NCBI GenBank assembly: GCA_000320545.1
Contig: ADNK01001434.1
Span: forward strand, 1-64,000
DNA: 64,000 bases
Direction: 5' to 3'
Source of the DNA: Bigelowiella natans CCMP2755
Taxonomy: Eukaryota > Protista > Cercozoa
The notes under the pieces: generated by a model
Told to the model about the DNA's origin: nothing
Databases searched by the model: none
Seen by the model: only the letters and a program-made list of their open reading frames with translations
In this document: positions 6,140 through 31,705 of the stretch, piece by piece
How the letters are laid out: every line of letters begins with the position of its first letter
How positions within the stretch are numbered: position 1 is the stretch's first letter
Program-made: the position numbers and the translations under genes

Positions 6140-7639
6140 AAGAATTATTTAAGAAATAAATTATGGCCACAGGGGGTGCAAGATTTCTATGTCGCAGTAG
6201 CTGGCACCGAGGAAAATCTCCCTGCAGCTTTCCAAGCCCATCGAGTCGGCGGCAGGTAACTCTTCCAAATATGGAGATGGACCACCCGTCTCATTTTTCA
6301 TTTCTTTTCAGCTCTCCGTATCACATCCTTTATATGCCGAATATGTCTGAGGAAGAGCGATTAAAAGTTATCAAGACCCATATGGTAATTGATAATATTT
6401 TACGAATGAAGAATTGGATTCAATCTCAATTGATTCTAAATCAGGGGGAAACGCAGAACAAAAATCACCATGGAAACAGGAAGAAGTTCCATAGCCTTTT
6501 CCATCTTAGTAAAGGGTTCACCCCGTTCCTTCCATTCGTTGCCAACCAGAGCTACAAAACATCCCTCTCATTTTCCCAGGTAAGAAACATTATATCGGAA
6601 CTTCCTGTTTTTATTTGAGAATTGTTTCTTTCCAAAATTAGTCTATGGCTGAAGTAAACACAGTGAAAAGTGTAACTGCAGAGAAATACTGGGCATATCT
6701 ACAGGTCGCATGAATTTGTCAATATTGTCTGCCAGGTAGAAATCCTTAATATTTTTGGTTCCCATTCAGGATCTGGTTAATTTTGGAACACGAGCAGTCG
6801 ACAAACCAAACGCAAGTAAAGTGCAGAATTACTTCACGAACAAGTTCACGTCTTTTGGATTGAAAACTTGCAAACAAGCTGTTCAAATAGATGGCACCCC
6901 GTCGAACAATATCCTTGCTTTTCTGCCCGCTACTGCATCCGATTCAAACCCACAAATTGTGACAATCGGAGCACATTATGATTCCCGTCCATTTGAAGGA
7001 GAAGCACCAGGTGCAGAGGACAATGGTAGTGGAAGCGCTGCGTTGCTGAGTATTGCTGAGGCACTCGCGAAGTCTACCGTCGGAACAAAGCACCATATAG
7101 TCTTCGTTGCATTCACTGGAGAGGAGCTAGGCCTGTACGGGTCAAAGGCTTATATTGATGAGTTTGGATCTTGGGGAGACGAGTGTAGAACTGTACTATC
7201 CAGCATGATGACAACCACCTCAGTTAAAAAAACAATCAACACATGCAAGGCTGCTATTATTATGGACGAAATTGGATGGAGTAGTGATAAACTGGACGGT
7301 CACACTGTCACGCTTGAAACCCGGGAATTTGCAGAAAACCCAGTTATGAATCATCTTGCAGCAGCATCTGAGAAATTCAATAGTGCGAAATTCATTGATA
7401 ATAACGGTGTTGCAGGTGGAAATCTGAACATTGTGAGTTCTTTTAATCCTTTCGGGTCAGACCACATGCCATTCCTAAATGTTGGTAAAGCTGCTGTTCT
7501 CACCATAAATGGAGACGACGAAGCCTACCCTAATTATCACAAGAAAACGGATACAATAGAAAACGTCGACAAGCAACTGGCGATAAAAATTACTCGAATG
7601 AACTTAGCTGCTTTGATTAGGATAGCAAATGATGATTAA
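5683..7639 (+). CDS. Secreted M28-family Zn metallo-aminopeptidase
   Basis: N-terminal signal peptide. The last exon carries the M28 metal-ligand motifs GAHYDS, GAEDNGSG, GEELGL, MDEIG, GSDH and YHK..D. Confidence 0.9.
6082..6136. repeat. (GC)n(CA)n microsatellite in an M28 gene intron
   Basis: Read directly from the sequence. Confidence 0.95.
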
Positions 7640-7680
7640 TGTTATTCTGTGAATATGAAAATACAAATTAGTGCAACATT

Positions 7681-8780
7681 TTGCATCCACATCATGATGC
7701 AGCCGCCCGCTCTTCGCTTAAGTGAACGCTGCAACACCATCGCTTGCGCTAGCTAGTGCGCTGTGATTGATGGCAAACTTGCTAGCTTGGGCTAGTGGTT
7801 GCTGGTGCTGGTGATAGACCTAGAGTTAGAGAGCTGACAGCTTGCTGTGGCTCACTCAGCTGCCGGTGCATGACACAGGTCAACACTTCGTTGTTGCATG
7901 TTGCACGTTGCATTGAGCTGCATTGTTTCATGAATAATGTCGTAGTCGCCACGGATGGGCATCTAGGGATGTTTGGGGCGCGTGTGCCTAGTGTGCACGT
8001 GCGTGCACAGATGCGATGCGATCGATCAGACAACATCCATCGCTAGATCTCTCCCACACGAGCACACGAAAAGTCTCGTTGCTTCTGTTTGCCGGGATTC
8101 AAATATTCTGTCCATGGCATGGTTCTTAGTCAGTCAGTGACTGCGTGCGGTCTTGCCTCATCATTCTCATCATCAACATCCTTGATGGCTGAAACCTGCT
8201 AGCAGCTTGGGATGCTTTCTTGTCAGCAGTTTCAACAGACTACTTTGCATCGCAGCAGCAATGGCCCGCGCGCTTCTTGCACACGTGATTCGTTTGCAGC
8301 TGCAGGCAAGAAGCAGACATCAACCAAACAATGAATCAAGCGTCTGACTTCATCGTGTTTCATCAACGTGCCTAGATGCGTCAGAAAACGTGTTGCAACT
8401 GCTACTATGATGCACTCATCAGGGGTTTGCTGCTCTTTGCGTCAGGACCGTTGGACATTGTGTGCTTAGTTGGGAAGAACGAGGATGCAGGAGTTTGGCA
8501 AATGGCATGCCGTTTGATGATGTGTTGGAATGTGAACAAACAAAAGTGATGATGGACCACACTTCCAAAGTGTGCGAAACGCAGTTGCCTCGAACTAGCT
8601 TCAGTGAGGACCAACTGATGAAACCAGCAGGATTTGAAAATTGGTATCATGGTCATTCTAGCATTGCGGATCAGCATGACTAGTGGCAACATGACGGCGA
8701 CGCAATGCATCCATTCCAACTAGGAACTTCCTGCAGGCCGGTCTACGATGTCGAAACTACTCCCACAAAATCATCAGAAA
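7681..8780. other. TpA-depleted, CTAG/TGCA/CATG-rich intergenic island 1
   Basis: Hand count for 7681-8760: ~28 TA, 14 of them in CTAG and only ~4 outside CTA/TAG context. Confidence 0.8.
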
Positions 8781-8919
8781 ATCATTGTCGCAAGCAACAA
8801 ATCCAAGGCTGTTTTTTAAGCGTTACCAGTGACTAGGCCAGTAGTTAAAAAGTACTCCCCGCTTTGCACCAGCGTCGTAACGTGCCGGTCGAACGATTGC
8901 CCCATTCCTTAATGAGAGG

Positions 8920-10449
8920 ATGGAAGCGGATACTACGAGTATGGATCTGGACCAGAAATTCCTTGATTGTCGAAGCAACAGTGAAATAGAAGACATGTGA
9001 GTGTGAACTAAAGTATATCTGGAAGAAGACTGCAATGCTGCTAGATGATGAATGGCAACAATTTTGACTACGTATATGAACGGGGAACTCAGTCAGTGCA
9101 CAATGTGCCAATCTCATCGAACTCTGCACTAATTCACATTTACATTTGTGCTGTAGAAAAGGAATTGATGGAAATGAAAAAGTGGCTGTAGACGAACCCA
9201 TTATTTTCACCCTGCTGCTTCAATTCGCTGGGGTCCCGCCTCCTACTACAGTCATAAATACCACGCGGACGATTCTATATATCCGATGGGTCCATTTCGT
9301 GATTTTGTGGACGACAACGCTATTTTTTATGATATCACCTTGGATAAAAATGAGGTCAGCTTATTATTCAACACACTACCGTGCTTTCATACTTGATATT
9401 TCTCTCTGATGGGGAGAAATAAAAAATAAATAAATCACGCTCTCAAACGATATATTAGTTTATACAATCAAACTTTCTCGATAAGATAGTCCATACAAGA
9501 GTATCAGAAACAGATCACACATTTGGAAACCCCTGATGCATATTTGGACATATGCATGCAAATAAACATCAGGAGTGATACATATGTGCAAAGCTGGTGG
9601 GATGTGGCCTCGAATCTCTCCGATCTATGGGCAATTGGCATGGCTGTATGCTACACTCGCAGGCGAGAATGGATGACAGGTCTATATCGCACCGATATTA
9701 AAATCCGCGAATCCGTGGATTTTTTCTCAAAGTGGATATATATTGCCGATGTGGGCGGTCTCTTGGTAGCCGTAGCAGTCTGGACGACATACAGCGTTTT
9801 GCATGTAGCTATTCTCCGATTTCATCCTGCAATAACACTACCGTCCCTAGTGATCGTTCGCTGGCCACAACTACTCACCTGCGGGAACTTATTGTTTCTT
9901 CACTGTGTCATAAGCACCGCTATAGTCCGTCATCACTCTGAGCGACTCGGGAAGATGGCTAAAGCGGCCTCCAACAAAGTATATGGAACTTTGTTCGACG
10001 TCTACGTGACGACCGACAGCCGCCTTGAGGAGTTGGCTAAGTTATTAGAGATTCCCTTGGGACTGACGGCAGGATTGCAAGTAGGCTTCCTGTCGCTCGT
10101 ATTCCTAAGCTATGTCAAGACAGTGCAATCAGAAAATTACCGCTGGGCTCTTTATGCACTCTATTTAATCCGGGGTCTCATCGCGATGCTCAATATCTTC
10201 GTGCCTCTTGTTGTTCTTTCGTCGGCACAAACTGAATTCGATATATTCTCGCGGTCAATACTAAGTAACAAGAGCGCTCCATTTGAAGAACTTTCACGAA
10301 TTAGATTCCTCATGATCGGGCGACCCCTGGTGTTCAAACTGTTCGGAATAAGAATAAACCGTTACACCATCGGCTCGGCGTTCATTACATCGATCGCTGT
10401 GAACATGCCGGCGGTGCTTTCTGCAGTATTTGGAATTCGTTTGGATTAG
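8920..10449 (+). CDS. Multi-pass membrane protein resembling the 7TMIC/gustatory-receptor-like (GRL/DUF3537) superfamily
   Basis: About 7 hydrophobic segments across exons at 8920-8995, ~9156-9354 and ~9490-10449. The C-terminus RPLVFKLFGIRINRYTIGSAFITSIAV resembles the Gr-type TM7a/b region. Confidence 0.55.
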
Positions 10450-10679
10450 TAGTTAATGATGATCATGGAGTAAACGTAGATTTTATTTGTCCATATCCAT
10501 ATCAGCAACTATGCGAAATATGTTGCGCCGATCATAAATAGCCATGACAGCAAACATATCCTTATCATATAGAGTCAGCAAGTAGGGCGTTCATGTGAGT
10601 GGGTCCGGAAATAGTGAGCATAGCCTATATTCTGCTTGCATTGTAGAATTCCCAGTTGCATACTATGCACTTCATTTAT

Positions 10680-11560
10680 CCAAGTACAAACATGCTAGTT
10701 TGTGGCTAGCACCAGCTAGTCTGCTAGTTGATCAACGCGGTGTCATTATGGTTGCAAAATGCAACCTTTTTTGTTTGCAACAGCCAAATATAAATGCTAC
10801 AAAGTCACAATACTGTGCGATTGAGCTTGTTATTTCCATGCTGTCGATTTTGTTGTAGACACTAAGCGCAAGCATGATGCATGTCATGGAACCAGAGCGG
10901 AGTGCACCAAATCCTGGCTTCGCTTCAATGACTTGTTCGATGATGGCAACGGCGCTGCTTCCAATGACGAGTTAAGTTACAAGTATGGAGCAGCTGTGGT
11001 TTGCTCCTTGAAATCAATCGCGCACAAGGGAAACAAGTTTTGTTTCTGAGATTCGTAGATTCAGCTTGATGACAGAAAACGTGTTGGGTGATTTCACCCC
11101 TATCACCACCTCATCAGAAACTCGCAAAAAACACTTGCGAACACATTGCAAACCAAGACGTGCATGATGCTGCAATCACTAATGCGATAGAGGTTGTCGA
11201 TGACCTCTGTCCAAATTCCTCATTGAAAGCTGTGCAATGCGAATCATGCATCAGAAGTCAACTCTAGCACTGCGCATTGTGCGCAACATCACTAGATCAT
11301 CTAGTCATCACTAGACCAACGTCATGGATCACAGGCTCTCATCCCCAGAACATGCTGCACAACAAACAAGACTCAACAATCAGCTGACCGTGATGATGGA
11401 CAGGATCGACCAAACAAGATGACTCAAGCAGAACAAAAGGAAGCGCGCAGAGTCGCATGCAGGACGACATGAGCAACATGTTGCATTCACATGCATGAAT
11501 GACATCATTGCAGAAACAAATGGATGCAACTTAAGCGCTGTAGCCGCAGCTTTGCACAGC
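10680..11560. other. TpA-depleted, CTAG-rich intergenic island 2 (convergent 3'-3' spacer)
   Basis: 11041-11520 has 8 TA by hand count, all in CTA/TAG context; 11341-11520 has none. Confidence 0.75.
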
Positions 11561-11769
11561 TACATGAGGATGACCAATGAAAATATTTAATTCTTGTGAT
11601 GCATATATGTGATATTAATGTGTCTATTATTTTTCACATGCAAGTAAATGACACGAAGGTAAGGCGTCATCATTCTGTGCTCCGAACAAACTCATTAGTT
11701 TGCCGGTTCTCGATTTCAAATAACATCACAACTTCAAATGACTTGGTGCTTGTTCCTACTTTTAGTCCA

Positions 11770-14700
11770 TCAAATGCTTTTCTGCTTCATATCCATATCC
11801 GCCTTGTGCTTGTCCGCTTTCGAAGCAACCATTGACGCTGTTTTTTTCTTTTAGGGTTTTAGAATGTGCAAAAATGTCAAATGAATAATGTGCATGGATC
11901 GATGATGGATCTCAGTGATGATTATGGGTGAACTGTAGAATTCGACCCTGAAATTGTGCTGTTATATCGTTTGCCCAAAGCATGCACACACTTTCACTCA
12001 ACATCATTTATTATGTGTTTTGACAAATTGCGCACCTGACTCTGTGCCAAAGACATTTTTTGTGCTGGCAGCTGAATTGTTTCAACGTATGACGCGTGTG
12101 ATTGAGAGCCGAGGAAGCTTTTTTGCAGGATCGTGTCTAATCTTTCTTCTACCTAAGTCGACATTGAAAGTTGATAAGAACTGAAAACTGGCTGGGATCG
12201 AAACTGATTCAAGGAAGCACCTTTACTGTTGCCTTCTTAAACAAATTCCTCGGTGTGTTACAATGCGTAAGGCTAGAAAAACATACAATTTCCTCACGTT
12301 ATATTGTCCCCATGATCAATTGCTATTCATCAAAACCTTCCTCTTCGTTGATGGTGGTGCACAATGTCTTTGGATGATGCCCTTCTTCGGGCTTTTTCTG
12401 CAAGATTTTCGATAGATTGTTTCACCTAGTTATATTTCAAATATACATCAGAGCTCTTCGTTGGCCGTTAATCAGGACAAAGACCTCATCAACACACTCG
12501 GAATCTATCATAACAGAATGAGGAGAGTCTGGATTCAAATATTTTCGAATAATAATTTCGGCTAAGAGATAAGAAAAATGCAGTCAGCATAAACAAAATT
12601 GCGCTAATTTTTTCAAATATCATCACCTCGAGCCCTCAACCCCCTATCAAGCTGGTTAAACGTGTGAACAGCTCGAAGAAATTTAAAAAGATCCATTGGT
12701 GAAGCCCCTCGCAAACAATCCCTATATGTGGAAGATATGATATCATCACAAACTCCAGGCCGAAGATCACGAATTCAAAGCTGCCACTCCGCTATCATAT
12801 ACTTAAATTTAGCCTTAATGTCCTCCCCATTTGCTTTCAGGTGGCTGGTCAAGTATTTTGAAGTTTCCTGGAATGAAACATGCCATAATTGAGGATCTGT
12901 AAGATATACGTTGCCAGACCAGTGTTTACCACTTCCTTCACGAAATAGTCCGTGCACACGCAGGATGTTCTGGGGCCATAAATTGCTAAATGATTTAGCA
13001 ATCCAACGAAATATTATTGAGACACAAAAGCAATAAACTCATCTTTCAACGATAAACCTAAATGATGCATGGCGCAGTACTTCGATCCTAGAAACTTCCC
13101 TTCTGGTGCTAAGCTCAAGTATGGACACCCATACGACTGGCATTTTTTAGGTCGTGCTCGTGCGCGCTGAAGGAAACGATAAGACTCAATGTTGCATGCG
13201 TTGTTGAAAAGAGATTGGAGATTAACCTCACCTTATTCTCAAGCTCTACCATCTGCTCTTTTAACAAAATTGATAAATTTTCGAACAAATCCTTAGCCAA
13301 AGAGAAGTTAAATGCAGAATTCTTGCATACCGGGGTCGCTAATTTGGTACCTTTTTCTCAGATTCATACGTTTTGTCGTTCATAACAACTTCTAAGAACT
13401 CAGTACTCCTAATAGAAACAATGTTTTGAGATATGAAGTCTCATTGTTTTGCTGTGTCTATCACCCATAGATTTCGAAGAGACTATTCATTTTTTTATAA
13501 TTTTTCTCTTGGAGATGACCTATTTATTTTGACGATGGAATTAAATTATGCACGTATCTAGTAGTAGTTGCCAATGCAACCTTTCATTAGAGCCGTGACG
13601 ATAACACGAAGTTGCTCGATTGTCCGGTGCAATGGTTCCACTTTGTATTTTCCTTCAGTTGATAAAGCATCCAATATCTATGATGGAGACAATTAGAATT
13701 GGATCAGCGACGACGATTAGACACATCAATACAGACCTGAACACCGAGAAGATTTAGGGGCTCGTCAGCATCGACAGTGTTACTTGCCGTCAGTATCTTC
13801 TCGTCAGCCTTAACAGAAAATTTTGTTAGCAAGGTTCTTCTTGGATGTGGATGAAACCGGTATGACCATGATTTTGATTTTTGTGGCAATCTTATAGAGG
13901 TCGACAAGTGCCGCCTTAGCTGCATGAATGATAAGCTGATTTCAACCACATCTTTCGTTGTGATGATGACAACTACCATCCTTTTTCCCATGAAGCTTGC
14001 AAGCAGCCCCTGTCAAAGCTTCTATAATTTTTTCTCCCTTCGGACCTAATGCGTAATATATTCCTTTATTAAAATTAACACATGTCAAGCTACAAACATG
14101 CACCACCAAGAAAGCGATTAATTATTTTTCTGCCCAGCTTCGTTCCGGCCTAAATCATGCATCGTATATGCGATACGTTACTCAGAGAAAATCTATCTTC
14201 TGATAGTTTGTACATGCGGTAAATAGAGTTAAGAATACTATTTGAAACGTACTAAAGATGGAAATTAGCACAAAGTTAGTTTCGATGGCAGTGATTTAGT
14301 AAAGCCAACAACTCTCTAATGTCATCATGATACTTTTTTTTGGCAAATAGCCATTGCTCATATTAAATTACCGTCTTCGAAGCCAGGAACTTCTTCGCAC
14401 GAAGTCTTAGAGGGCCTTTATCCGGTGAAGTATAGGCTTCCTCGTCTGTCAAAGGATCGACATCGGCCACATCTGGGGCCTTCAGGTCGGTCTCGATGTC
14501 CCCCATCGCAATGCTCGTTTCTTGATAGTGAAGTGAACGAGCGGAGAAATTAAAAAAAAACTACTGCTGCACTGACAGAACCGAACAACACAAATGTCAA
14601 CTTACTGCTCGTTCCGCTGTCGGGGAGGAGCATTCGAACACTACATGTACATGTAGAGCTCCGTGAAACTAGAATTTTGGTTTCCTGGTGGTTTTGAAGC

Positions 14701-16950
14701 ATCGACGTGCCGGAGAGACACATCTTTGATTTGTTGAATGTCTTACACATGAGATTCCCTGCGTTCTGAAAGTTTTCGAACCCGAAATTTTGTAAAAAAA
14801 ATGGCGACGAATTTGGGGCTAATTCATGGCATTGGAGACGAAGCGAGTATGTCGTACATGCGGTTACGTTGCTCTTTCTTCTAGTGCACACAAATGAGAT
14901 TGAAGATTGCTTTGACCTTTGTAGCAAGCTTTCATTGTGCTCTTCGTATGATGCAGGCGAATCTCCTTTTAAAATTGGGAAAATCTGGTATCGAAAAAAC
15001 TCAGATCGCATGCATTTTGGGTCAAACCCATGTTTGGTTGATACAGATAAACACTAACGAGACCAGTTGACAGATAAAAAGGATGCCCTTATTGGAAGTA
15101 AGAGAAGGGTCAGGCTCTGAACCGCGAAAATTGGCCTGGGTTTCTTTCCTTCCAATGCCTCACATGCCTTGGCAATACTCAAAGGGTCCAACCTGTCAGC
15201 AAGTACTCGAACTACTCCTTCAAAGGAAAAATGATGCGTTGCAAAGTCATAGAGAGACATGGGTTTTGCTACTCGCATGGAAAGAATTCTCCTCGATTCG
15301 AAAGGCTCGAGCTCTCACGCATCGATAAAAGGTTAAATCCCATTCTTCAGATCCAAGCACGAGCTACCCTTTCCCTCTTTTCTTTCCATCAAACACTTTT
15401 AAGCAACAGTTAGCCACTCTTCGGAGGCCGATTCGACCGTCAAGCAGTGTCGAAATCGCTCATCCCGGAGGTCTTAGCTCTGACCTAGTGTTAAGATAAT
15501 CACGGCAATAGATAAAAGCTTGTTAGTTTATTGTCACGGCTCGCAGAAAAAGGTCACGGGACAATCCTGGTCGATTTTTTTCCCTACACAGCCTCTCCAT
15601 TTACTTAAATTTTCCATATCCACGGCAGTGACACTATCCCCCCCGTGAAGCAAGCAAGGTATTTACACACACCGAGAGAAGCCAAGTTGCTGGACAAGGT
15701 TTCTATTTTATCCACAGATACGATAGATGCGGTGAGAGATTAACTTTCTTGTCATGTTGACTGACAAAGCATGTGATTTTCACTCGCTTTAACCAAAATT
15801 TGTCTTATCGAAACAAAAGTCACCTGCATTGGATTGCTGCTGCGTAGGATCAAACTATCTCACCCCCACTTACTTACCTTCGCTGGACATAAGCAGAATT
15901 ACCACGATGATGAGATCTACAGCGAGAGAAGACTGTCCTAAGCTCTCCTGCTGGGATGCACAAGATAGGCGCTATGTCCATACGAAACCTGTGTCCGTCG
16001 TCTACCCTCCAGGCAATTCTCTTTTTCTTCTTCAAAAAGTCTCACTGATGCTGCTAGATTATTTTCTGATGAGTTTCTAACCTTCCCAGGGCTTGACGAA
16101 GCGAATGAACAAAAAATCTTTGACTCTCACAGCGTACAGCTTGTGGATGATGATGAGAAGCAAATCCTTCATGGATCTTCGAAAGTAGTCAACATCTTCG
16201 TCGATCTCTTCATTAACTCGTGAAGATGAAAATCTTCGTATCTTTTAGGTAAAAGAGTCTTCTGAAATCGGACGGGCCAAGAGACGAAGTTGGGGAGTTG
16301 ATGAGTAATGCAACTTTATTTTCCAATCGTAGCTTTGTCCTAACAACATGATTTCTTCATGAAAATCCTGGATGTGCATTCGGAAATATCAGGCACAGAA
16401 GGTGCGTAATTCATTAGAAGGGAAGTGTATATCAATGAGTGAATATGGCAAACAGGTTCCTTGATGGACTTGAACTATACGGAAGAGACTGGCGTGCGAT
16501 ACAGAAGCACGTCAAGACTCGCACAGTAAGTACCTTACTGGATATTTAAAATTCTAAGTGAAAGTTTAGCGCAATGGGTTTGACTTTCTGGTATCTATCG
16601 ACAGGTGGTTCAGATAAGATCTCATGCCCAGAAATATTTCTTGAAGCTGGAAAGACTCGGACGGGTATGTTTGTCTACCAAATCTTTTTTTTTTTCCTTC
16701 GCTCTCTAAATGAATGAATCTATCAGAGCAATGTAATTCCTCCTCGTAAAATGCCAACGCACGCGCATCCTCGGAGCAACGGTAATGAAGATCTCCATTT
16801 GGACTTTTCTAGTCTTCCCAAGATAGTTATCTTAACGTCGTCACCATGAATCAGGAAAAGTGAAAAACGATGGCAAACCCAAGAAACGACAAAAATGGCA
16901 GGTAGAAACTCTATTTTGTCTCCATGTCGGGTAACACCACTCACGCAATT
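11770..16950 (-). CDS. Large multi-exon protein with a C-terminal RGS domain (N-terminal part unassigned; may be two genes)
   Basis: Spliced exons at 12.1-12.8 kb read MDLFKFLRAVHTFNQL..AEIIIRKYLNPDSPHSVMIDSECVDEV..NLFKKATVKVEERLDTILQKSFLGSQSHASY, matching the RGS helix pattern. Further minus-strand exons with GT-AG introns run to ~16.9 kb. Confidence 0.65.
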
Positions 16951-17062
16951 TCCACTAATTTCTCAGCCGGACGAACATGAAAGATTTGTTCAAGCTATCA
17001 AGATGTATGGAAGGGTAGTTGATGATGAAAAAGATATGCTAAGGCTTTCGTGATCATATATT

Positions 17063-17101
<39 letters not shown>

Positions 17102-17261
17102 ACTGGTCGCGCATTCGGGATGCCGTTGGAACGAGGACAGTGACGCAGATTTGCAGCCATGCGCAGAAGGTTCTATATCGTCGTCATGCATAAGATCGAG
17201 TATTATCAGATTGAATATAGTGATAATAATCCCCTTTTATCATCATCATCATCAGTACTTC

Positions 17262-17743
17262 ATGAAATTGGAGAGAATGGGCCAGGTCGATCTTATTCCT
17301 CTTCCCCGTCCGCGGAAGCGGAAACATGATGGAAGCGATGGGTCTCATTCCCAGGGGAGAATGTCCCCCGTAAGATCTATTTCGCCTGGAGTCAGAGGAG
17401 GTGTTACTATCTTCTCTCTTCGTTTTCTTTATTGAGTAATATACAACTAACATAATTCTTACTGAACTACAAAGGAGACCCTAAATGGGAAGATCCCCTA
17501 CCGACTCCAAGAGACGAAAAGAAACTTCGCGTTAAATTACGCTCAAAGACCCAACTTGATTTTTCGGAGGAAAAAGGACGAAAATCTCCCTCTATCGCTC
17601 CCCCCCCCCCTGCTTCTGCTGCCGAAGATGGTTTGGATCATTGCGTGAATAAATTGATATGCAACGTAACGTATCATTCTAATGTTTTTTTAGGAATTGA
17701 AGCTGATACTATTCAAGCATTACTGCTGTTAAAGCAAATCTAA
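17262..17743 (+). CDS. Small basic, low-complexity, probably nuclear protein (3 exons)
   Basis: NLS-like PRKRKH, SP sites, C-terminal EADTIQALLLLKQI, and canonical introns at ~17391-17474 and ~17632-17693. Confidence 0.55.
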
Positions 17744-18270
17744 AAAAAAAAAGTTCAATCACTCCGTGAAAGGAAGCCATGTGCTACGCACGTCATAGAT
17801 GCACACTGAGGATTCTCTGTTGTATGTACAGAGCTAGAGAGTAGTCTACTACCGTCAAATTATTTTTTTTTAAATTGCTGTAGAATCCCAGTAATCATAG
17901 TACGTTTACATGAACAACATTAATTTGATTTATGTAATATCCCTCTAAATGACCTCATATTATATTAGAAAATTCCAAGGTGTTTTGCAGTAAATTTTCT
18001 TTTTTCTCGCTATGCATATTAATTCAATATGTTTACATGTCACTGATGATATGTGTAGATTTATTATCGCGGGTTCATAAATACTTCTGTACTGTTTTGC
18101 ATGAGATATCTAGATATGTGCGATGGCGTGCTAGCGTAACATGTATGCAGGTATTGAACATTAAACACAACAGTGCTGAGTGAGCCAGGGAGGTGCATGC
18201 GCACACACGCGCACTCCTACGATAAACATTGGTTTTGTGTTTATATAATACATGCTGCAGCTGCGAAAGT

Positions 18271-18292
18271 CACGCTAGCACGTGCTAGCGTG
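18271..18292. repeat. Perfect 22-bp palindrome CACGCTAGCACGTGCTAGCGTG
   Basis: Self-reverse-complementary. The half-site recurs at ~18127-18137 and 18325-18336. Confidence 0.9.
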
Positions 18293-18800
18293 TAATATAT
18301 TCTTTCATGCCTTTACACCCATTGCACGCTAGCACGACATTAAAATTACAGAGAACAAGCGAATGTGTAAATGCATGCGAGAAATTTGATCTGATGCTAG
18401 CATGCCACAACATACAAACCTAGAAACGCTGAACTCTTGCTGTGCTCACGACATTGCTTGATATAACATTCATCGGCCTGTTGGCGCTGACTTTTATATG
18501 TACTCTTTTGTACTCATTTTGCCTTGAATTTAAGACTTGGCCATTGCACGCAGCTAGGCAGTTTGATGCGGAAAAATCTTTCGAAGGGAGAAGCACAAAA
18601 GAAATCCTTCGTGAGAAGGATTGTTCACTGTGTCTGCCATTTTATCCCGTCGTTCATTCAGTTTGGGTTCAGTATTTTGAATGGATTGCACTAATGTAAG
18701 AAATATAACAGAGAGTTGGAAATCTTTCCTGATGTACTTTTTACGGCATAAGTCTCATGGCAATATGAGAAACAAAGCTGCTTACTGATGCTTGGATGCT

Positions 18801-20646
18801 CTATGACTGTACAACTTCAAACGACTCAATAATTTGCTTCAACTTATTCTGATATCGTCCCCATTGAGACCTAGAAATTTGGAAAAATCAAATCCTAATT
18901 AATATCCGAGTCTCAACGGGCAGGGGGAATATGAAATCTCTATATTACTGGGTTGATTTGACAGCCAGAACGTAGACGTGGCCCTTGTAAACCGTCGCAG
19001 AAACAAGAGAGTGAGGCCGGACCTCGTAGTTGTAGTAGGTTAGACCATTCTTCTTCACAACCCTGCTCATAACAACGCCGTCTCATTAAAACACAGCCAA
19101 TAGCAAGATTTGGCCCCCCCTTCTAAGGTACTTATCAATTTTGTTACTTGACATCGGAGACTTCCTCGCCATCCTCCTCAATGCCAATTCCAAGGGCTTG
19201 AGGTGCGAACGCAGGCAGCAGCTTCATCGGCGGTGCAATCTGCAGCCGAACAGGAAAGAAAACACAAAAACAAGAACACACCGTACCATACTCTCATCAG
19301 ATATTCATTCTTCTCCATTGAGAGAGATGCCTTACTTCATCGATGGTGATGGTATCTACTTGATCCTCGTCGTCAATGAACGTGAAAACAGGCGGGAGGA
19401 CGACCTGAGAAAGTTTTCTCATTTGTAATGAGAAGCGCTTCCACCTAAGACGCAGGCGGGGGAACAATGAAAAAGACTAGATTTTACTATACCAGTAAAT
19501 CCCCCATGTCTGGACTGGTGAAACGAGAGTCGGTCTCGGGGCCCTAAGTTGAGAGGGAACCCAAAACACTCGATTATCAACAAACGAAGTGGTGATAGGT
19601 GAAACATATGAGGTGTGAAAATAGGACGTCATCTTTTCAACCGATGGATCCGCAACAGAGACTGCCTTCTGCTTCCTACAAATTAGGGTTACAAGGACAG
19701 AAAATAGTGAGGCCACAAAGTAACATCTACTTGATGTTTAGGGAGGCAAATACCATCCGTCTGGGACTTTGAAAGAATACGGTGGAAAGCTACGACAAAG
19801 ATATAACACACAAAGAGATATCGTTCTACATCACCACGAATATATATGCAGGACCATTAGCTTCCTTCACGATTTCAATTTTTTTTAAAAATACAATATC
19901 CAACTTACTTGCCCTTGCCCTGAGGTAGTGTAAGAAAAACAAGGGAAAAGTTAGTTAGATAATGATTCTTCCCTTTCCGACGGCAATACTGAATCAAATT
20001 CGTCTAATATGTATCTTGGTTAAGCAATGAAAACCTGACTGATAGCTCGCATGCCCCCCGAGGCACTGCAAAAGAGGAAGTCGAGGAAAGTTATAAGATT
20101 CAACACAACTTTGAAGAGGAGACATGATGAATTCGCATTCGCAGTACGGAAGAGCACCTTGCTCCATATGGTCGTGTGTATAGTCTGAAACCATCTTCAT
20201 CCACATCCCCGAGACCAGGGGATCGCTAATACGAGTCGAAGTGCATAAGTATTCGAATTAATTTTCGTACACACAAAAAAAGGGGTACTCATTACCGAGG
20301 CAGTAACACTGTCCTTGGCCATGGAGGGGGCAGAATTCATCAAAAACATCGAACCCGCTGTAAGTGTTGTTGTTTGTATGATTGATCGACGTGGTAAAGA
20401 GCTCCCGCCATCCCTATGCTCCTGTGGGGCTGCTCCACATGCCATTGTCATTCTCGAAGAAGAAACTCCAACGCGGCTGCGGAAGGCTCCCTTAGAAACA
20501 CGCCCTACTGTCGTTAGATCACGGACGCTGCGATTTGATCCGCCAACGACGAAGATAGAAAAGGCAACTGCTCCCACAATAGCCAGGAGAACGAGCCGGT
20601 TCGAGCGACTGGCAGCTTTGGTGTGGAGGGGGCGTATGGCTACCAT
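18801..20646 (-). CDS. PPD6: PsbP-domain thylakoid lumen protein, PPD6-like, with a tripartite presequence
   Basis: Signal peptide, then an R/S-rich transit-like peptide, then a twin-Arg signal (PRRSII..SMA). Mature exons DGFRLYTRP, PPYSFKVPDGW, VSVADP, LLPAFAPQALG and GLTYYNYEVRPHSLVSATV..QWGRYQNKLKQIIESFEV match PPD6 as I recall it. Confidence 0.85.
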
Positions 20647-20889
20647 TGCAGCTTGTTATTAGAGTCAGCTGCGGTTTCCCGACAAGCTGATTTGGGCCAA
20701 AATACATCGAAGAAACATCGAAATTCGGTAGAGACTTTCGATTGCATTGAATAGAACAAAATCCATCGAGGTAATATCCTACCTTTGATTCGTCGTACTT
20801 TGCACTTGAAGCTTAATTGAGGGGACCCGATGCGCGGAAGGGGGAGGGAAGAGAAAACCGAACTCGCGGGGTCGGATGCATCTTCGGCC

Positions 20890-22530
20890 ATGCGAAGGAG
20901 CTTCCCTGACCGTCAATTCCTCCGTTATAATGGAGAGCGCTACCCCCGATACCCCCCGCAACGTCTACGCCGACTCCAAAACGTAGCTCTCACGGTAGGC
21001 TGCACGGAAGGTCCACAGTGGCTTCGATTTTCAATTCTGCTATCGGTCTTTATGGATCTCAGGTTTTCTGTGCCTGGCTAGCTCTCTCGAGTGCCAGCAC
21101 TTTTTCCTCGCCGGGTCAACAACAACCGTCACGACAGGAAGATGCCATGCTTCGCAATAACCCGATCAAAAGCGTGGTTGGAGGTGTTCTCCGGCCTGTC
21201 AATTTCCTCTGGAGCCCCTTCCGAAAGATTATCAGAGCATCGAGAAGAATAAGGTACTCTCTTCCTATGGAACCATATGACGCAACGTAAACGTTGGAGA
21301 ACACGCTGCTTCTGAAGAGCTAGGTAGAACTTATCTTGCCTAAACGACATCTATCAGGGTTCGCACACGAAAACGGAACCAACGTCGGAAAGCGTGTGAA
21401 ATGAAATCGATCGTGGAGGAACAATTGCGCACCAAGCCAGTAGAGGGTATTAGGAATGCGAGCAAAGCAGAGCCTGCCTCTGAGACAGTCGCTCAGTCAC
21501 AGACTTTCGAGGTAAGAATTCTTGGACTTGTATGTATTTTCCGTTGCACATCCTTCTTCATGCATGCAGGCTATCGTTGGCCAGGAATCGTTTGAGCAGG
21601 AGGGCGAAGACCTTCGTATGAAGGTATTCATGATCCAAAGCTGTGAAAACTGTCTAAAGATAACGCTGTTTATCGCTGTTTACAGGTGACGCTGTCCACT
21701 CTGCGTAGAGTGCGATCGAAGGATGTCTCTTTCTCAATTGATACGAGTCGTCGCCTAATACTGAGGGTATTTAAAGTAAATTTCACTGCATTCTATCTCA
21801 CCCTACTATCTGCGTACAGGTTTTTGGGCAATTGGTAACTAATGGAACGCTTTACCAAAACATAAAGAAAGACGAGGTTTGTCAGCTCAGTTTGTTTTAT
21901 GCCTACCCGCATACGTGTACTGAACACTTTCGTTGCGTAGACTTACTGGGAATTGGAGACGAATGAGAAAACTGGGATGCCATCAGTTGTAATATCAATG
22001 GTCAAGGCGAATGAGAATATGTGAGACTCCAATTTAAACTCGATGATTGCGACCCTACGTGATTGTGAGGCTTCGTGTCATAATACGAAGGTATTGGCCG
22101 ACCATATTTGTTGAGAACAAGGAGCATATCAAGTCAAGCTGGTAAATTAATTTATCATAATGTTCTTGCGTTCTAAGCATGCTCCAATCCTGAATTTGGA
22201 CGAAGGCTGGTCCTCAAGTAACGATTTTTACACAATTTTCTCTACAGGGACAAGATAAACAAGATTTCATACGAGATAATGGTTGAGGCAGCGACACGGT
22301 CTGACAGTGGGTTCACGCCAATGTCTATCGGAGAATTCCAGAGTATGCCATGGGTAATCCTTACGCAGTTTCACTTCAATTTGTTTGGGATATATCCGCC
22401 ATGATGCTTCATGTTCCAGGAGGACAGAGTAAAGCGAATGTCAGCGGAGAAAATGAAAAAACTCCAAGAATATATGGACGTAAAAATTGTAGTAATAGTA
22501 ATAGTAATAGTAGTAGTAGTTGTTGTAGTT

Positions 22531-22564
<34 letters not shown>

Positions 22565-23054
22565 CACTAGCACAGTGGGAATGTGGTTCTTTCCGTTTGA
22601 GCTTATTAAGTCATCGAGAAACATTTTCCAGGAGGCGAACGGCAATATGACACGAGAAGAACAGCAAAAAATGGTGGAGTATTACAAGAATCGTAACCCA
22701 GAGGTCAGAAAAAAATGATGAACAAACTTTTGATATTGCGCTCAGCCATGCTACAAATTGCCTTAGGGATCGCAATCGTACCTCGACGCACTGGAAAAGG
22801 GAAGAAAACACATCGGCTCTGATGATATGACGATAGATCACCCTGCGTTGCCAACTGGATCCAAGTTGACATTCCGACGACCGTCTCATATGTCGAAAGA
22901 AAAATTTGAAGCGGCCAAAAAATCCTTTTTCTCGGCGACCCCAGAACAGCAACAAATGATCCTGAAATCTGTGGCTGCTCACAACAAAGCAAAGGACGAG
23001 TTGACAGGAGCATCCAACATAGAGGAAAAAAAGGGAATTTTTGAGTTAGAATGA
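20890..23054 (+). CDS. Probably plastid-targeted CS (p23/NudC-like) domain protein
   Basis: Signal-like VFCAWLALSSA plus an Arg-rich transit region. CS-type exons: VTLSTLRRVRSKDVSFSID..LILR|VFGQLVTNGTLYQNIKKDE|TYWELE..VVISMVK..|YWPTIF. Confidence 0.7.
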
Positions 23055-23099
23055 TTCGCATAGTCGGTAGTTACAAGACGCAGTCTTCTCGAGTAGCCA

Positions 23100-24440
23100 A
23101 ACATTTGGGGTGAGTCGCTGCCTCCAGGCTGTGCGCAAAAAACAAATCATAGATCACTAAGAGAAGTAGCGCAATAGACAAGCACAAACCTTAGCAGGCG
23201 GTCATCACCATTCATGTGAGACAACCGTGTCAAGCTAGCAAGCTTCAGATGCGCCCATGCATGTTCTAGATGTTGTGCGTGCGTTTTTCTTCTGTTTGTC
23301 TGAAAGCACCGCAATTGACCATGTTTCCTCGCTCACGTGAACTCTTCTGTCGAATGGCCATTAACGGAGCACACGATTCGGTATTCATCGCATGCACCAT
23401 GCATGCAGATTTTCCTTGCAGGGAACAATGCTGTGCGGGCATCATTGACAGTTGATGCACTGCTGTTTGCGCGTCAAATTGTGACCCTGTCCAAAAATGA
23501 TTTGTGTGCGACCATGGTGACAGCTGTCAGTTTGCAAGTTTCGAAGCTTGCATCCCATGTGGTGGCTGAGCAACGCCTTTCCGCCAGTGTGTGCTTGTGC
23601 CTAGCTTGCGAGAGCTTCGTGTCGCGACCACTGCAGCTCAGTCGGCGCAATGTCGCTTGCATGACCAAGCAAACAGGTGTTTTGCTTCGTGCTGTTTGCG
23701 GTTTGTGTTTGCGGCGCGAAGACACTGCCAAGCTGACAAGTATCCGTCATCATGGTGCATCAGGATCAGGCAATGACACAAAGACACTTCCACACCAATT
23801 GTTCCACACAAAGAAACTGACCTTGAAAGTTGATCCCTTCGAAGTTGGTGGAACTTTTTCACCCTGCATCGATCTTCAGTGTCCTTGTCTTTCGTATTTT
23901 TGTCTTTTCATGCATGTGATCGTCCTTTGACTTGCTCGCCAATTGAACCTGCATCTTGAAGCACTCGTCAATCTCAAACATCCTCGGAACAAGTGAAGAA
24001 GCATCGTGCAGCTGAGGGGTTTCATCAATGAGAACAATGAGAACAATGATGAAAAACCACATTTCCAAAGTGTGGCAAGACGCTTGCAGTGCACGAAATG
24101 CAGTGCCTCGAACTGGCTTCAGCTCAGGACTGACTAGCTAGCACCAGGCAAACTAGCGGGGATCATGCAAATTGGCACGATCTAAGCATTGAAAAGCATC
24201 ACAACTAGTAGCCAAATGAAGACGACGCAAGGTATCAAATCAATCCTGAGCAGGAACTTCCTGACAGCTACGTCCACACGGAGATCAACGTTGGGGACAA
24301 CCGAGGGGGCATCAGGAGTGCCATCGCGCTTTTTCTCTTTGGTTTCAAAAGTTTTTGTTCTGCGACAACTTTGTTCATTGTTGTCGCATTTGCAGAATCA
24401 CCAGCAAAAGAACGGAGTGCATGTGAACGGAACCCTTGAA
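23100..24440. other. TpA-depleted intergenic island 3 (the strongest)
   Basis: Hand count: 5 TA in 23281-24120 (840 bp), against ~32 in the nearby 24481-25260 (780 bp). Confidence 0.85.
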
Positions 24441-25290
24441 GGCGATCTAAAGGGAAATCGGAATTTCCGAAGTTCCTGTTCTTCCTCAGCGTGCATGCAA
24501 ATACTTATTCCTATTTTGCCTTTATTTTTCTCCTGCGACATCAAAAATCACTCAAATTTAGGGACAAACCATCTTCAAAAATCGGAGCGGATGCAGGTCC
24601 ATGGAAACCCTTTCCCGCTGCCGCGCCCGCCCCTACACCGATGGCCCTGGAGCAGGCCAAGACGGATGAGAAGGCTCAAGATCAATGAATTGATTATCGT
24701 CCTCCCTGCTCTCATCTCCGCGGTATAGTGTTTCGCCATGTAATGTCATCGCGAGAGTCATATGCAGCATAAACTACAAGTTGCCTGACGCCAAATCGTC
24801 TTAATGCGAGCGCCTCCCATTCTTTCCCCCTCCCAATCAGGTTTTGTATTCAATATCGTCGATTTCTGCAACTGGAAGCGCAGAGCCCTCGCGAACGTGG
24901 CTTCGCAGCGGAGTCTTCGGCGATCATGACACAAGAATGGCCGACGTTGTATCCTCCGCGTCACCATCCCACGTAAATAATAAGGATATTCCTGCCGTGA
25001 GCAACCTCCCAATCCTTTCGAGCAGACCTAGTTTGGGCACTTCGGGTGGAGGTAAACTTAGTAGCGGAGCTGTTTCAATCCTGCCCCCTTACATTCGAAT
25101 GCATTCATTTCCAAAATTTTTGCGACATCCAATTTGCCTCGCCGTCCGTCATGCCTTCAACAGTTCCAAGCTATGCAGTTGAATGGAAGGGGGAGGCTGT
25201 ACGTTTTAGTCATCTTCAATTTTGAAAATATCTTCTAGGTTCCGTAGGTTCACCCGTCGTATTCGGGTTGGGAACTCCAGAAAGTAGTTG
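24250..25290 (-). pseudogene. Possible decayed gene fragments
   Basis: Protein-like stretches interrupted by stops (RIETAPLLSLPPPEVPKLGLLERIGRLL..; RKNRNFGNSDFPLDRLQGFRSHALRSF..). No domain recognised. Confidence 0.2.
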
Positions 25291-25435
25291 GGAGGGGGAG
25301 GGGAGATTGAGAAGAAAGAGTATGGGGGAGGGTTGAGTGGGCAAGTGAGGTTCAGGTTTTCTTTGAAGTACTATGTAAAATATTTGCTTAATATGTTACA
25401 AATATCCAAAAGAAAATATCCACGATATATAAATT

Positions 25436-25473
<38 letters not shown>

Positions 25474-25586
25474 CATATAATAATATTTTAATATGTATAC
25501 ATGTTTACAAGCTTACCTCCATTCCCTGCCGCTCAATGAAGGAGATATCACATTCTCATACACATGTTTTCTTGTCATTAATCTAG

Positions 25587-25741
25587 CATGGTATGTCATA
25601 AAACGGGACGGAAGCCGCGAACCAGTAGCGTTCGACAAGATCACACGAAGGTGCATATAAAATAGGGATCATTTTAAATTCCCTACCTTTGTCACGCAGC
25701 AACGGATTCGTGCTTTTGATAGTTGGTATACCACACGTGCG

Positions 25742-25786
<45 letters not shown>

Positions 25787-26368
25787 GTCTGTGTGTGTGT
25801 GCGTGTTTGTAATCGTGTCTATTCATATGCTCCTCTCCTCACACACACAGTCTATTTGTTTCTCAGAATTCGCAATTTGTGTGAAGGCAAGTGCGGAGTG
25901 CACTCGCCCCTATGTGCACCTGTCCTGGGGTAGGAAAGCTAAATGTTTGAAGGAATGGTGAATGATAATGAGACGATGCCTTCCTTCCCCCCCCCTTCCA
26001 AATCCAGGTATCCTGACTACGTGGACCCCATCGTGGTAGCGCATAAGGTCACGCAGGGAGTTCATCCAGGAGTAAAGACGGTTTGTCGATAGCAACACAA
26101 TAGAAGACGAGTGTAGCATGATGATGTCTTTGTGAGAGGTAGTATGGTGCTGCGAGGAGGGGGGGGGGGAGAGTGATACCGTTGCTGATCGTGATAGCCT
26201 TGTCGGCCTCGCCGGAACGGTGTCGTGTCGTGTTCTTCACCATGGAGAGGGTCAAGCGAATAATAACGATGAGATGAGTTTGTCCTAGTACAGGATGATG
26301 GTGATTCTAATGATAAAACACCGATTTATACAGTCGGAGCTCGACTCTCTGGCAGCCCAGACAGCTGC

Positions 26369-26410
<42 letters not shown>

Positions 26411-27920
26411 ATGCAGGAGAACAACCTTACCCCATCCTCCTCCTCCTCCTCCTCCTCCTCCTCCTCCTCTCTCATTTTTTTCCTTGTACTATATTGCTGT
26501 ACGCCTCCTACAGTCTGTGCTGTATTATGTGGATGGATGCTACCTACTGCCTCACACACACACACACATTCACATTCACATTCACATTCACCTGCTCACG
26601 TTTTTAAGGAGCGTGGATCATCCTGGCTACTCACGCCTGGCGGCTCGAATAGCCATCTCGAATTTGCAGAAGCAGACACCGGCCACGTTCTCGGAGACGG
26701 TAATAATAATAGTGCCCGTTAAGGAGGAGGAGGAGGAGAGGAGGAGAGGAGGAGGAGGAGGAGGCTACACACATACCTTCGGCATCATCCTAATTTTCGA
26801 TTATTTCAGTCTCTGCACACAGCAGTCTCTTGACACATCATACGCAAGAAAACACGCCCACGTGGCGCAGACGCACATGCAAAAAGTGTGCTTATGTCCG
26901 TCCATCATCCGCACATATGCGCATCCCATCATCATCATCATCAACAACAACGACAACAACTTCGCTTTCATGACCACTCATTCTTGACTATTATTTGCGT
27001 ACAGGTTCGGCGTCTCTGGGAAGATGCGCCTCGCCTCGCAGATGGGACAAGGAAAGCATATCTAAGCAAGGAGTTCTACGAAGTCGGCCAATACGAGCAA
27101 CCTTGTTACATACGCACACATACATATATTCATGTGTGGGTGTGCGAGAATATATATAATATATATAATGTGCCGTGTGTGTCTCACGGTTTCTTGACAA
27201 TCAGCTGGTGATGGCCAACGCGGAGAAGATCAACTCTCGTATTCGGCACGAGAGGGACTTCGACTTCGACTACTTCGGCTTCAAGACTATGGAGCGAGCC
27301 TACCTGCTAAAACTCAAGGGCGAGGTCAAAACACGCGCGCGCGTACACACACACACACAAAATCATGACATTATATTATACGTTCTTCATCATCTTTATC
27401 ATCAAAATCACGCCTCCCCCCCCCCCCCCCCCGGCAGATTGTGGAGCGACCGCAGTATATGTTCATGCGCGTGGCCGTTGGAATCCATGGGTACTATTTC
27501 GTGAATCATCCATTTCCTTCTTAACATATATCGCCTCGCACTCCCCTCCCTTTCTCCCTCTCCTCCTCCTCCTTCCTCCTTCTGATGATGATTATGATGA
27601 TGATGATGATGATGATTGATGATGCTATTTATGATACAGCTCCGATCTGGATGCCGCATTCGAGACCTATGACCTGATGTCCTCAAAGGTGAATGATTGA
27701 TTGATTTATTGATTTCTTCACTTGGCTCTCCTCCTTATCCTCCTCCTCCTCCTCATCATCATAATATAATGTTGCTAACAAAACGTATCTTCTTCTTCTT
27801 CGACAACGATGACGACGACAACGTCTTTCCCCAGGCCTTCATTCATGCCTCGCCGACCCTCTTCCACGCAGGTACATTCCCTCATCTCTTTGCCTCTCGC
27901 TCTCTTCATATTATTTTGTA

Positions 27921-27958
<38 letters not shown>

Positions 27959-27969
27959 GTGTACTCTTG

Positions 27970-28009
<40 letters not shown>

Positions 28010-28597
28010 GCACGATGGCATGATGTGCTGCCCTTTGTAGTAAGTAGTAGCAGCAGCGTTAGCTGATGATACTTACTTGTAGGCACCCGCACCCCACAGC
28101 TCAGCTCATGCTTCCTACTGCCGGTTAAGGTACTAGAGGAGGGGGTGGAGAGGGGGTGTGAGAGGGAGGTGGCCTGGATCAATGTTAGCGCAATGGGGAG
28201 GCAATAGTGACCGCTAACTTACAGCCACCCTCTACTATTTTTTATCTTAGGACGACTCAATACAAGGGATTTACGATACGCTTAAGGTAATAGTAGGCAC
28301 AGCATCACCGAAGAAGAAGAAGAAGAAGTAGAAGAAGAAGCAAGGAATGGTGCGGTATGTACCAGCAGCAGAAGAAACATGTACCGCTGATCATCATCAT
28401 CAGCAGCAGCATAGTCATGGTCGCTTCTTTCATCCTTTGTTCTTGTGATGTCTGTTGCATTGCCTACTATTGATTCCTCGTGTGCGTAACGTTCTCGTCG
28501 TCTTACTGCCTGCATTCATACAATACCACGACAAATAACAGAGCTGCGCGATGATCTCCAAATCGGCTGGGGGTAAACGTACACTACTTACAGCGTA

Positions 28598-28676
<79 letters not shown>

Positions 28677-29160
28677 CGTGCGTGCGTGCGTGTTTTGACT
28701 TGATACTCTTACGCTTCTGGTTGCGTCTCTTCTCTTCTTCATCATCGAATAGGCATCGGCTTGTCTGTGCAAAACATCCGCTCTAAAGGGAGCTACATTC
28801 GAGGTTGGGCCAGCGCCAGCAGCAGTGATGACGATACATGATGACGACGATACAAGATCAATCATCATCGTGTTTGTAATGGCGGTGGTAGTATCACCAT
28901 TCGCATCATCCTAACAATTGTTTATTTCTTCTTCATACTCCTCCTCCTCCTCCTCCTCTTCCAAATGACATAATCATCATTGCTGGACGGCAACGACGAC
29001 TAACCTGCGGTGCGGGCAGGGACCAATGGCATCTCAAACGGGTTGTTGGAATTGAATTTACCACTACTACTACTACTACTACCACTACTACCACTGCTAC
29101 AACCACCTTTAACGATCTTATCTGAGAGGAAACAGCTACGCCATCGCAAATGCCATACGC

Positions 29161-29201
<41 letters not shown>

Positions 29202-29963
29202 TGCGCACATGCACATCTACTTCTCTTCTGATACCCCACTTCCTTCTTTTCTTGCCTCATCATGCCTCACGGTCTCCCCCCCCCCCCCCCCCCTCTCCTT
29301 TTCTCAGCCTCGTGCCGATGCTACGTGTCTATGATGCCACAGCACGCTACGTGGACCAGGTAGATTATGCGGTTTATGGATGAAGAACGCCGTGGGCATG
29401 CCAGTAGTAGCAGTAGTAGCAGCAGCAGTATAAGCCTATCATCTTTACTACAACTTGTTGATCCGAATGAACTCCTTGCCTCCATCCCCCCCCCTGAATT
29501 ATGACGACGACGATGACGATGAATAGGGCGGTGGAAAGAGGCCAGGCGCTATCGCGATTTACTTCGAGCCATGGCATGCAGATGTGGGCAAGAGGAGGGA
29601 AGGAGGAGAAGGGGGGAGGGGAAGGAAAGAGTTGATACACGACATCATCGCACACTGTGAAGAGAATTGAATGTGTACGTGTGTGTGTGTGTGTGTGTTT
29701 GTGTGTGTGCATTGGGCAATAGCGCATATATTGGTGTTTGTTGCTCGAGCAAGAAGTAATGGTATTCGCATGCTTGATCTTATATCGATTGAGGTGGATG
29801 GGAGGGGGGGGGGGGATTGTGGCACCATGTTGGTCTCTTCGTAGTAATAAAGATACGTTTGTTTTGTATCATGAAAGGTGTTCGAATTATTGGATTTAAG
29901 GAAGAACCACGGCAAGGTGCAAAATTTCCGCTCTCCCCCTCTCTTTACATCTCCCTGTGCCGT

Positions 29964-29999
<36 letters not shown>

Positions 30000-30395: not shown

Positions 30396-30428
<33 letters not shown>

Positions 30429-30943: not shown

Positions 30944-30997
<54 letters not shown>

Positions 30998-31114: not shown

Positions 31115-31160
<46 letters not shown>

Positions 31161-31645: not shown

Positions 31646-31705
<60 letters not shown>

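Follow-up and report, generated by a model that had tools for sequence, protein, structure and literature searches.

TpA-poor intergenic islands in Bigelowiella natans as very likely footprints of a TpA-directed A:T->G:C hypermutation

A window of 64,000 nucleotides (nt) from the genome of Bigelowiella natans CCMP2755 (assembly GCA_000320545.1, contig ADNK01001434.1, positions 1 to 64,000, forward strand) was analyzed for three intergenic islands from which the dinucleotide TpA (TA) is largely missing. A DNA sequencing run of the species from 2021 is identical to this window. An original prediction from the sequence alone had attributed these islands to T:A->C:G transitions at TpA that leave the palindrome CTAG untouched. 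Islands 1 and 2 flank a transcribed gene (gene B), and islands 1 and 3 carry the 3′ end of a long interspersed nuclear element (LINE). The bounds of the depleted zones were set from the positions of TAs located outside CTAG (non-CTAG TAs), and LINE pieces were detected with an nhmmer profile of 39 copies. The following features were annotated, where ORF denotes an open reading frame, UTR an untranslated region and SINE a short interspersed nuclear element:

7670-8816, no strand: island 1, TpA-erased untranscribed spacer between genes A and B (14 non-CTAG TAs in 1147 nt)
7676, plus strand: poly(A) site of gene A, coinciding with the left border of island 1 (RNA reads stop here and carry a loose A12 tail; RNA contigs reach 7674)
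7740-7830, no strand: GCTAGC/CTAG-rich patch on the gene-A side of island 1 (five CTAGs at 7750-7821; direct reading)
8529-8740, minus strand: 5′-truncated LINE 3′ end in island 1, comprising the end of ORF2, the 3′UTR and the start of the tail (nhmmer E=5.3e-37)
8746-10740, plus strand: transcript of gene B with introns at 8996-9157 and 9352-9571, flanked by islands 1 and 2 (spliced RNA contigs, GT..AG joints)
10686-11531, no strand: island 2, TpA-depleted untranscribed spacer between the 3′ end of gene B and the 3′ end of the minus-strand gene C (15 non-CTAG TAs in 846 nt)
11470-11600, minus strand: second dispersed short repeat, labeled R5 here, SINE- or LINE-end-like, at the edge of island 2 (45 other scored copies)
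23193-24501, no strand: island 3, in which the erasure of TpA is the most complete (9 non-CTAG TAs in 1309 nt)
24024-24313, minus strand: 5′-truncated LINE 3′ end in island 3, comprising the ORF2 C-terminus, the 3′UTR and a (CATTGTTCT)n tail ending near 24020 (nhmmer E=4.5e-84)

The depletion of TA is significant in each of the intervals originally proposed. Island 7681-8780 contains 28 TA where 59.5 are expected (Poisson P=4e-6), island 10680-11560 contains 26 instead of 47.6 (P=5e-4) and island 23100-24440 contains 20 instead of 72.5 (P=3e-13). The corresponding observed-to-expected ratios (o/e) of TpA are 0.40, 0.40 and 0.22, compared to 0.74 for the whole window. TG/CA reaches an o/e of 1.54-1.78 across the three islands, the dinucleotide GC 1.35-1.55, CC/GG 0.53-0.69 and CpG 0.71-0.78, which agrees with the TpA-poor islands of raised TG/CA and retained CpG described before. 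With 45.4-49.7% the G + C content of the islands is at or above both the window mean (45.8%) and that of the TA-rich flanks. In 400-nt windows, TA o/e amounts to 0.23-0.43 in island 1, outside of which one non-CTAG TA occurs per 10-20 nt, and to 0.09-0.29 in island 3, where TG/CA rises to 1.85. Island 2 contains a TA-free run of 344 nt.

A sliding scan of the window with segments of this size revealed the three islands as the longest-sustained combination of low TA with TG/CA of at least about 1.5. The sole near rival is a TGCA-rich tandem repeat at 59296-59693 with a period of 36 nt, 13-14 TGCA per 400 nt and a TA o/e of 0.44-0.56, which contains no CTAG and has no link to a LINE. Long host coding exons can also fall below a TA o/e of 0.35 without any TG/CA excess (e.g., the 916-codon ORF at 6953-9700 on the minus strand of locus L046, or window positions 46601-47250), so that a scan based on TA only mislabels exons as islands. 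The tetranucleotides most enriched in the islands are alternating purine-pyrimidine words (GTGC, GCAC, TGCA, CGTG and CATG), which would fit a conversion of TA-rich alternating tracts. Elsewhere, intergenic DNA is very dense in compound microsatellites of the types (TG)n, (GA)n, (TA)n, (GAT)n and (GTA)n, for instance at 25400-34000 of the window.

The islands had been regarded as dissimilar to each other, but islands 1 and 3 share a LINE 3′ end of about 210-290 nt, which is all of the element that the window copies retain. The LINE end of island 1 has at least 46 scored matches in the genome. For that of island 3, 53 other copies with 74-94% identity were scored out of 535 first-look candidates, and its minus-strand translation matches the ORF2 C-terminus of the family. 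At least 150 genomic copies have this C-terminus in common and differ in their start points, which is the classic 5′-truncation ladder of LINEs. One member (L048) encodes a 592-codon ORF2 with a reverse transcriptase domain (Pfam RVT_1, 35.7 bits, cut-off 29.6). This ORF2 contains no tyrosine, 4.4% cysteine and 4.2% histidine and is located in 3.2 kb of DNA with a single TA. The tail has the form (CATTGTT[CT])n and is followed by unrelated sequence. With a reverse transcriptase ORF, a 5′-truncation ladder and a 3′UTR tailed by short tandem repeats, the repeat is a non-LTR (long terminal repeat) retrotransposon. LINE 3′ ends are frequently stacked head to tail as two to four short fragments, each with its own tail (L003, L007, L045, L046 and L048), which suggests insertion into or beside earlier tails of the same family.

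The repeat R5 at the edge of island 2 measures 113-150 nt. It yielded 839 first-look candidates, and the scored copies are mostly 84-86% identical. It usually occurs solo, with a (TA)n or (TC)n(TA)n microsatellite as its immediate neighbor, and its TAs are kept and its flanks not TpA-erased (L023-L027). For this reason, short repeats seem to escape hypermutation. Apart from LINE and R5 ends, no homologies were found in the island interiors by sensitive blastn, six-frame tblastn (against 266 kb that include about 50 islands) and nhmmer. A genome-wide DNA search with the interior of island 3 (23200-24010) returned only this region itself, none of 16 long ORFs from the unique island DNA reached a Pfam cut-off, and an Rfam scan of the whole window detected no structured-RNA family.

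The LINE copies reveal that the loss of TA is mutational. In 39 aligned LINE ends, TA, TG and CA are mixed at single columns (e.g., 23/3/13, 14/8/17, 16/17/6 and 18/12/8 copies, respectively), and at other columns TA is wholly gone and the copies are split between TG and CA (10/17 and 15/23). TG and CA are found together at 18 column pairs, in contrast to 0-8 for the seven other double-transition pairs. Two copies with 93% identity over a length of 770 nt show eleven adjacent double mismatches, six of which are TG<->CA. Since TA, TG and CA are found at the same columns, the difference arose by mutation and was not inherited.

For a wider comparison, the LINE-linked islands of about 40 loci (64.9 kb in total) were set against 261 kb of background. 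The unique island DNA in this sample has lost 50.5 TA per kb and gained 59 TG + CA per kb. Its CC and GG contents have stayed the same, and CG per kb does not fall below background. Both this balance and the alignment of paralogous copies, which had been recommended as a check, bear out the predicted T:A->C:G transitions at TpA. TG and CA are almost equally frequent in the unique island DNA (102.2 and 100.7 per kb, respectively). Together with the similar cysteine and histidine contents of the ORF2, this symmetry argues for an action on resident double-stranded DNA and not on LINE RNA or cDNA.

TpA is nearly absent around essentially every sampled copy of the LINE end. The LINE-linked islands are discrete and 0.6-4 kb in size, and several loci lack TA altogether for more than 1.5 kb. 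Single LINE ends contain between 0 and 8 TA per 300 nt, and this count is positively correlated with the TA o/e of either flank (rho 0.37 and 0.54) and negatively with the length of the island. The depletion extends for a median of 750 nt past the LINE tail but reaches just about 200 nt beyond the 5′ side, and within single loci it weakens with the distance from the LINE.

Transcription ends where the erasure begins, as far as islands 1 and 2 are concerned. RNA depth is zero over 7788-8181 in island 1 and close to zero over 10743-11530 in island 2, and RNA data place the end of gene C near 11609. Thus, each of the four borders of these two islands lies about 6-70 nt from a transcript end, and the chromatin state may set them.

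A process of this kind has recently been described in the same species, although the original prediction had found no named mechanism for such algae. Of 302 single-nucleotide mutations in mutation-accumulation lines of B. natans, 231 were located in two viral inserts, a silent, single-copy 186-kb insert of a nucleocytoplasmic large DNA virus (NCLDV) and a 25-kb virophage (Mettrop et al., bioRxiv 10.64898/2026.01.13.699255). With a single exception, these 231 mutations are A->G or T->C, all on TpA according to the authors, although the context printed in four rows of their Table S2 is ATG or ATT. In the silent foreign DNA, TpA changes to TpG/CpA at a rate of about 6e-7 per site and generation. 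Only some lines were mutated, and an ADAT2-like adenine deaminase (Bn78255) is proposed as the enzyme (Mettrop et al.). A 30-nt reference allele from Table S2 has two exact matches in the genome analyzed here and none when reversed. Furthermore, all three islands lie beyond the 5% cut-offs used in the preprint (Rho TpA <=0.43, Rho CpA+TpG >=1.52).

Species, TA->TG/CA changes on both strands, the footprint of low TpA with high CpA+TpG, and the tie to transcriptional silence (seen in islands 1 and 2) and to sequences bearing a reverse transcriptase (LINE pieces in islands 1 and 3) are common to the published process and the islands. The differences concern scale and content. The published targets are inserts of 186 and 25 kb, detected as clusters of at least three consecutive 1-kb windows, whereas the islands measure about 0.85-1.3 kb and would thus fall below this cluster rule. 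In addition, two of them are anchored on 5′-truncated LINE ends and all consist mostly of unique spacer DNA. CTAG, the context of flanking bases, LINE islands of about 1 kb and borders at transcript ends are not mentioned in the preprint.

Taken together, the islands are very probably footprints of the TpA-directed A:T->G:C hypermutation of B. natans, by which TA becomes TG or CA. They are a true instance of this recently described process and neither an artefact nor a new system. The hypermutation would act on both DNA strands of transcriptionally silent intergenic spacers. As repeats, islands 1 and 3 contain LINE debris and island 2 just a short dispersed one; the LINE fragments and the adjoining unique spacer would be rewritten up to the borders of the neighboring transcription units. 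The enzyme may be the ADAT2-like deaminase proposed by Mettrop et al. A genome search for Tet_JBP (PF12851), prompted by the idea of a modified thymine, gave no match, with control genomes equally silent and intron-split genes read exon by exon. New here, and of moderate interest, are islands of small size anchored on LINE ends, the erasure of unique spacer DNA between flanking transcripts and the quantified handicap of a 3′ G and of CTAG.

This handicap is visible in the TAs that survive. Across the three islands, 29 of 74 surviving TAs (39%) are located in CTAG, in comparison to 4.8% window-wide, and 74% have a C before or a G after them (39% window-wide). In the LINE-linked islands, the density of CTAG is 1.47x that of the background, whereas the other 15 NTAN contexts are reduced to 0.03-0.26x. 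The half-site contexts, with only a C before or only a G after the TA, range from 0.08 to 0.26x and the other nine contexts from 0.03 to 0.14x. CTAG is therefore spared, as had been noticed, but it is slowed and not immune as claimed: the largest and most erased islands retain 0-0.6 CTAG per kb in contrast to 2.7 in the background, and each CTAG column of the LINE alignment is changed in 41-59% of the copies.

The published de novo mutations also include TAG/CTA sites. A hand tally of Table S2 with strands collapsed gives A 71, C 56, G 23 and T 76 as the base after the mutated A (226 in total), and TAG + CTA make up about 21% of the TA-containing trinucleotides in the background. On this basis, the handicap of a 3′ G is roughly two-fold or more, a value that is not normalised to the sites available in the viral inserts. 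The strict strand rule of the original prediction, by which TAG is never mutated, is not supported, since CCA/TGG products (CCAy + xTGG) are gained about as much as CTGy + xCAG, although background microsatellites confound this comparison. In the same tally, A->G at TAG was counted 4 times and its strand equivalent, T->C at CTA, 19 times; the other pairs are balanced (33/38, 25/31 and 39/37), all being counts without a denominator.

A G after the target A, which equals a C before the T, would slow the reaction. The palindrome CTAG would thereby be slowed on both strands and persist longer than any other TA. New CTAGs can also come from ordinary C->T changes, and with enough exposure CTAG would be lost as well. 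Assuming a rate ratio near 0.3 is enough to account for the half-site survival and for much of that of CTAG.

The alternative that survives best accepts the hypermutation and differs in why CTAG is kept: not by neighbor preference but by a palindrome-specific factor, such as a bound protein or a base modification, or by selection for motifs of the GCTAGC type. The product of the half-site effects predicts a survival of about 0.3x instead of the observed 1.47x. In addition, the CTAGs surviving in unique island DNA are 33% GCTAGC and 27% GCTAGA/TCTAGC (60% together), whereas these account for 19% and 16% of the CTAGs in the background. Both observations suggest that the motif itself may contribute, and normal intergenic DNA likewise has dense GCTAGC patches. 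Against this stand the plain 3′-G handicap in the de novo data and the loss of CTAG from the most erased islands. The numbers can also result from a rate ratio of about 0.3 if CTAG has a higher baseline in intergenic DNA and ordinary C->T changes at CCAG/CTGG supply further copies. Overall, this alternative appears unlikely, but it deserves to be kept in mind. The same tentative standing is given to a joint reading, by which the mutator is guided by the chromatin domain and neither by sequence nor by repetition. Debris of transposable elements (TEs) would nucleate a silent domain, the mutator would rewrite all of the untranscribed spacer, host DNA included, to the edges of the transcription units, and a palindrome-specific factor or modification would shield CTAG, especially GCTAGC.

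The intergenic patches at 18000-18600, 36200-37200, 45400-46000 and 53600-54200 have a normal or high TA content and up to 9 CTAG per 400 nt. Most of these CTAGs are part of GCTAGC or CATGCTAGCATG, the o/e of GC is about 2 and TGCA is frequent. Here, the GCTAGC motif may be cis-regulatory.

The remaining alternatives dispute the TpA-directed hypermutation of resident DNA itself. That the islands are intact pieces of a TpA-poor repeat or of foreign DNA, with no host mutation involved, is very improbable. It would be in line with the LINE fragments in islands 1 and 3 and with long family copies that are TpA-free throughout, and LINE masters in the same genome would themselves drift toward TpA loss. 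This is largely refuted by sites that are TA, TG or CA among copies and by the TG<->CA discordances. Moreover, the TA counts of the LINE ends (0-8 per 300 nt) vary and track their flanks, 73% of the island DNA is non-LINE and unique, and the mutation has been measured directly (Mettrop et al.).

Even less credible is an RNA-level origin, in which ADAR- or ADAT-like editing of UA to UG in LINE transcripts or cDNA was fixed by retrotransposition. A->G changes with a preference for a 5′ U do resemble ADAR/TadA substrates, as known from their biochemistry and considered in the preprint, and two of the three islands carry LINE fragments. Editing of one strand, however, predicts TG only or CA only, whereas TG equals CA approximately, as does cysteine (4.4%) histidine (4.2%). 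Unique DNA that was never retrotransposed bears the same signature, and the single-copy NCLDV insert hypermutates strand-symmetrically in the mutation-accumulation lines (Mettrop et al.). Selection against TA in spacers (e.g., as an escape from TA-targeting transposons, TA-containing poly(A)/TATA signals or a UA-cutting nuclease) can hardly be the cause, even though R5 adjoins (TA)n runs and the islands begin right after poly(A) sites. The spacers are untranscribed (islands 1 and 2), and dead 5′-truncated LINE copies cannot be under such selection. It would also have to maintain about 50 sites per kb across hundreds of spacers, which is implausible, and the measured mutation bias suffices (Mettrop et al.).

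Several points weigh against hypermutation as the origin of the three islands or limit its reach. The de novo mutation data stem from the viral inserts and not from these loci, and the RNA evidence covers islands 1 and 2 by contigs and a thin raw-read sample. The LINE substitutions were judged by column counts and pairwise discordances and are unpolarised, as no tree was used. Composition and gradients, not an outgroup, are the grounds for inferring that the mutations struck host spacer DNA on site. The LINE profile detected no LINE piece in island 2, and only about 27% of the sampled island DNA is recognisable LINE. As the other approximately 73% is without recognisable TE or protein homology, the unique island DNA could be old TE debris that can no longer be recognised. 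Concerning CTAG, the baseline was taken from the whole non-island genome sample instead of from intergenic DNA. Among the NCTAGN hexamers, GCTAGC is the most frequent genome-wide (19% of the background CTAGs), so part of the CTAG survival may reflect this motif and not an enzyme preference.

In fungi such as Neurospora, repeat-induced point mutation (RIP) converts C to T, mainly at CpA, and creates TpA. The process in B. natans resembles RIP as a host process that introduces one class of transitions into repeats, can spread to neighboring single-copy sequence and produces islands with a skewed dinucleotide composition. In contrast to RIP, TpA is destroyed and the G + C content rises, and a dependence on repeats is not shown here, given that the NCLDV target is single-copy and the short R5 repeats are unerased. 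Fungal RIP is ruled out for the islands by the destruction of TpA and by a G + C content that is not lowered.

Deaminase-type transitions with a nearest-neighbor preference, recorded in retroelement copies, are also known from APOBEC3 and ADAR. These act on one strand of cDNA or RNA prior to integration, whereas both strands of resident DNA and its non-mobile flanks are affected in B. natans. ADAR favors a 3′ G, which is disfavored here. ADAR-type editing fossilised by retrotransposition was rejected, because TG and CA as well as cysteine and histidine are balanced and the signature runs through the unique flanks. In the decay of CpG by 5-methylcytosine deamination, a self-complementary dinucleotide is likewise lost symmetrically to TG and CA in silenced DNA. 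In this case, it is TA that is lost and not CG.

The islands represent a rare kind of mutational process, a eukaryotic, dinucleotide-specific A:T->G:C hypermutation of silent foreign DNA that is in effect the mirror image of RIP and has already been reported for this alga. Its scope is widened by the analysis, as many kb-sized, LINE-bearing spacers (about 40 sampled) are shaped in this way and not only giant-virus inserts. The unique DNA around a mobile element is affected as well, and in the two spacers tested the erasure ends where transcription begins. The process requires a 5′ T and is hampered by a 3′ G, unlike ADAR, which provides a concrete read-out for assays of candidate deaminases. 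Furthermore, TA->TG/CA changes make no in-frame stop and remove TAA and TAG, and many long, overlapping ORFs result on both strands. For genome annotation this is a warning, because erased DNA is full of long spurious ORFs that are rich in cysteine and histidine and devoid of tyrosine.

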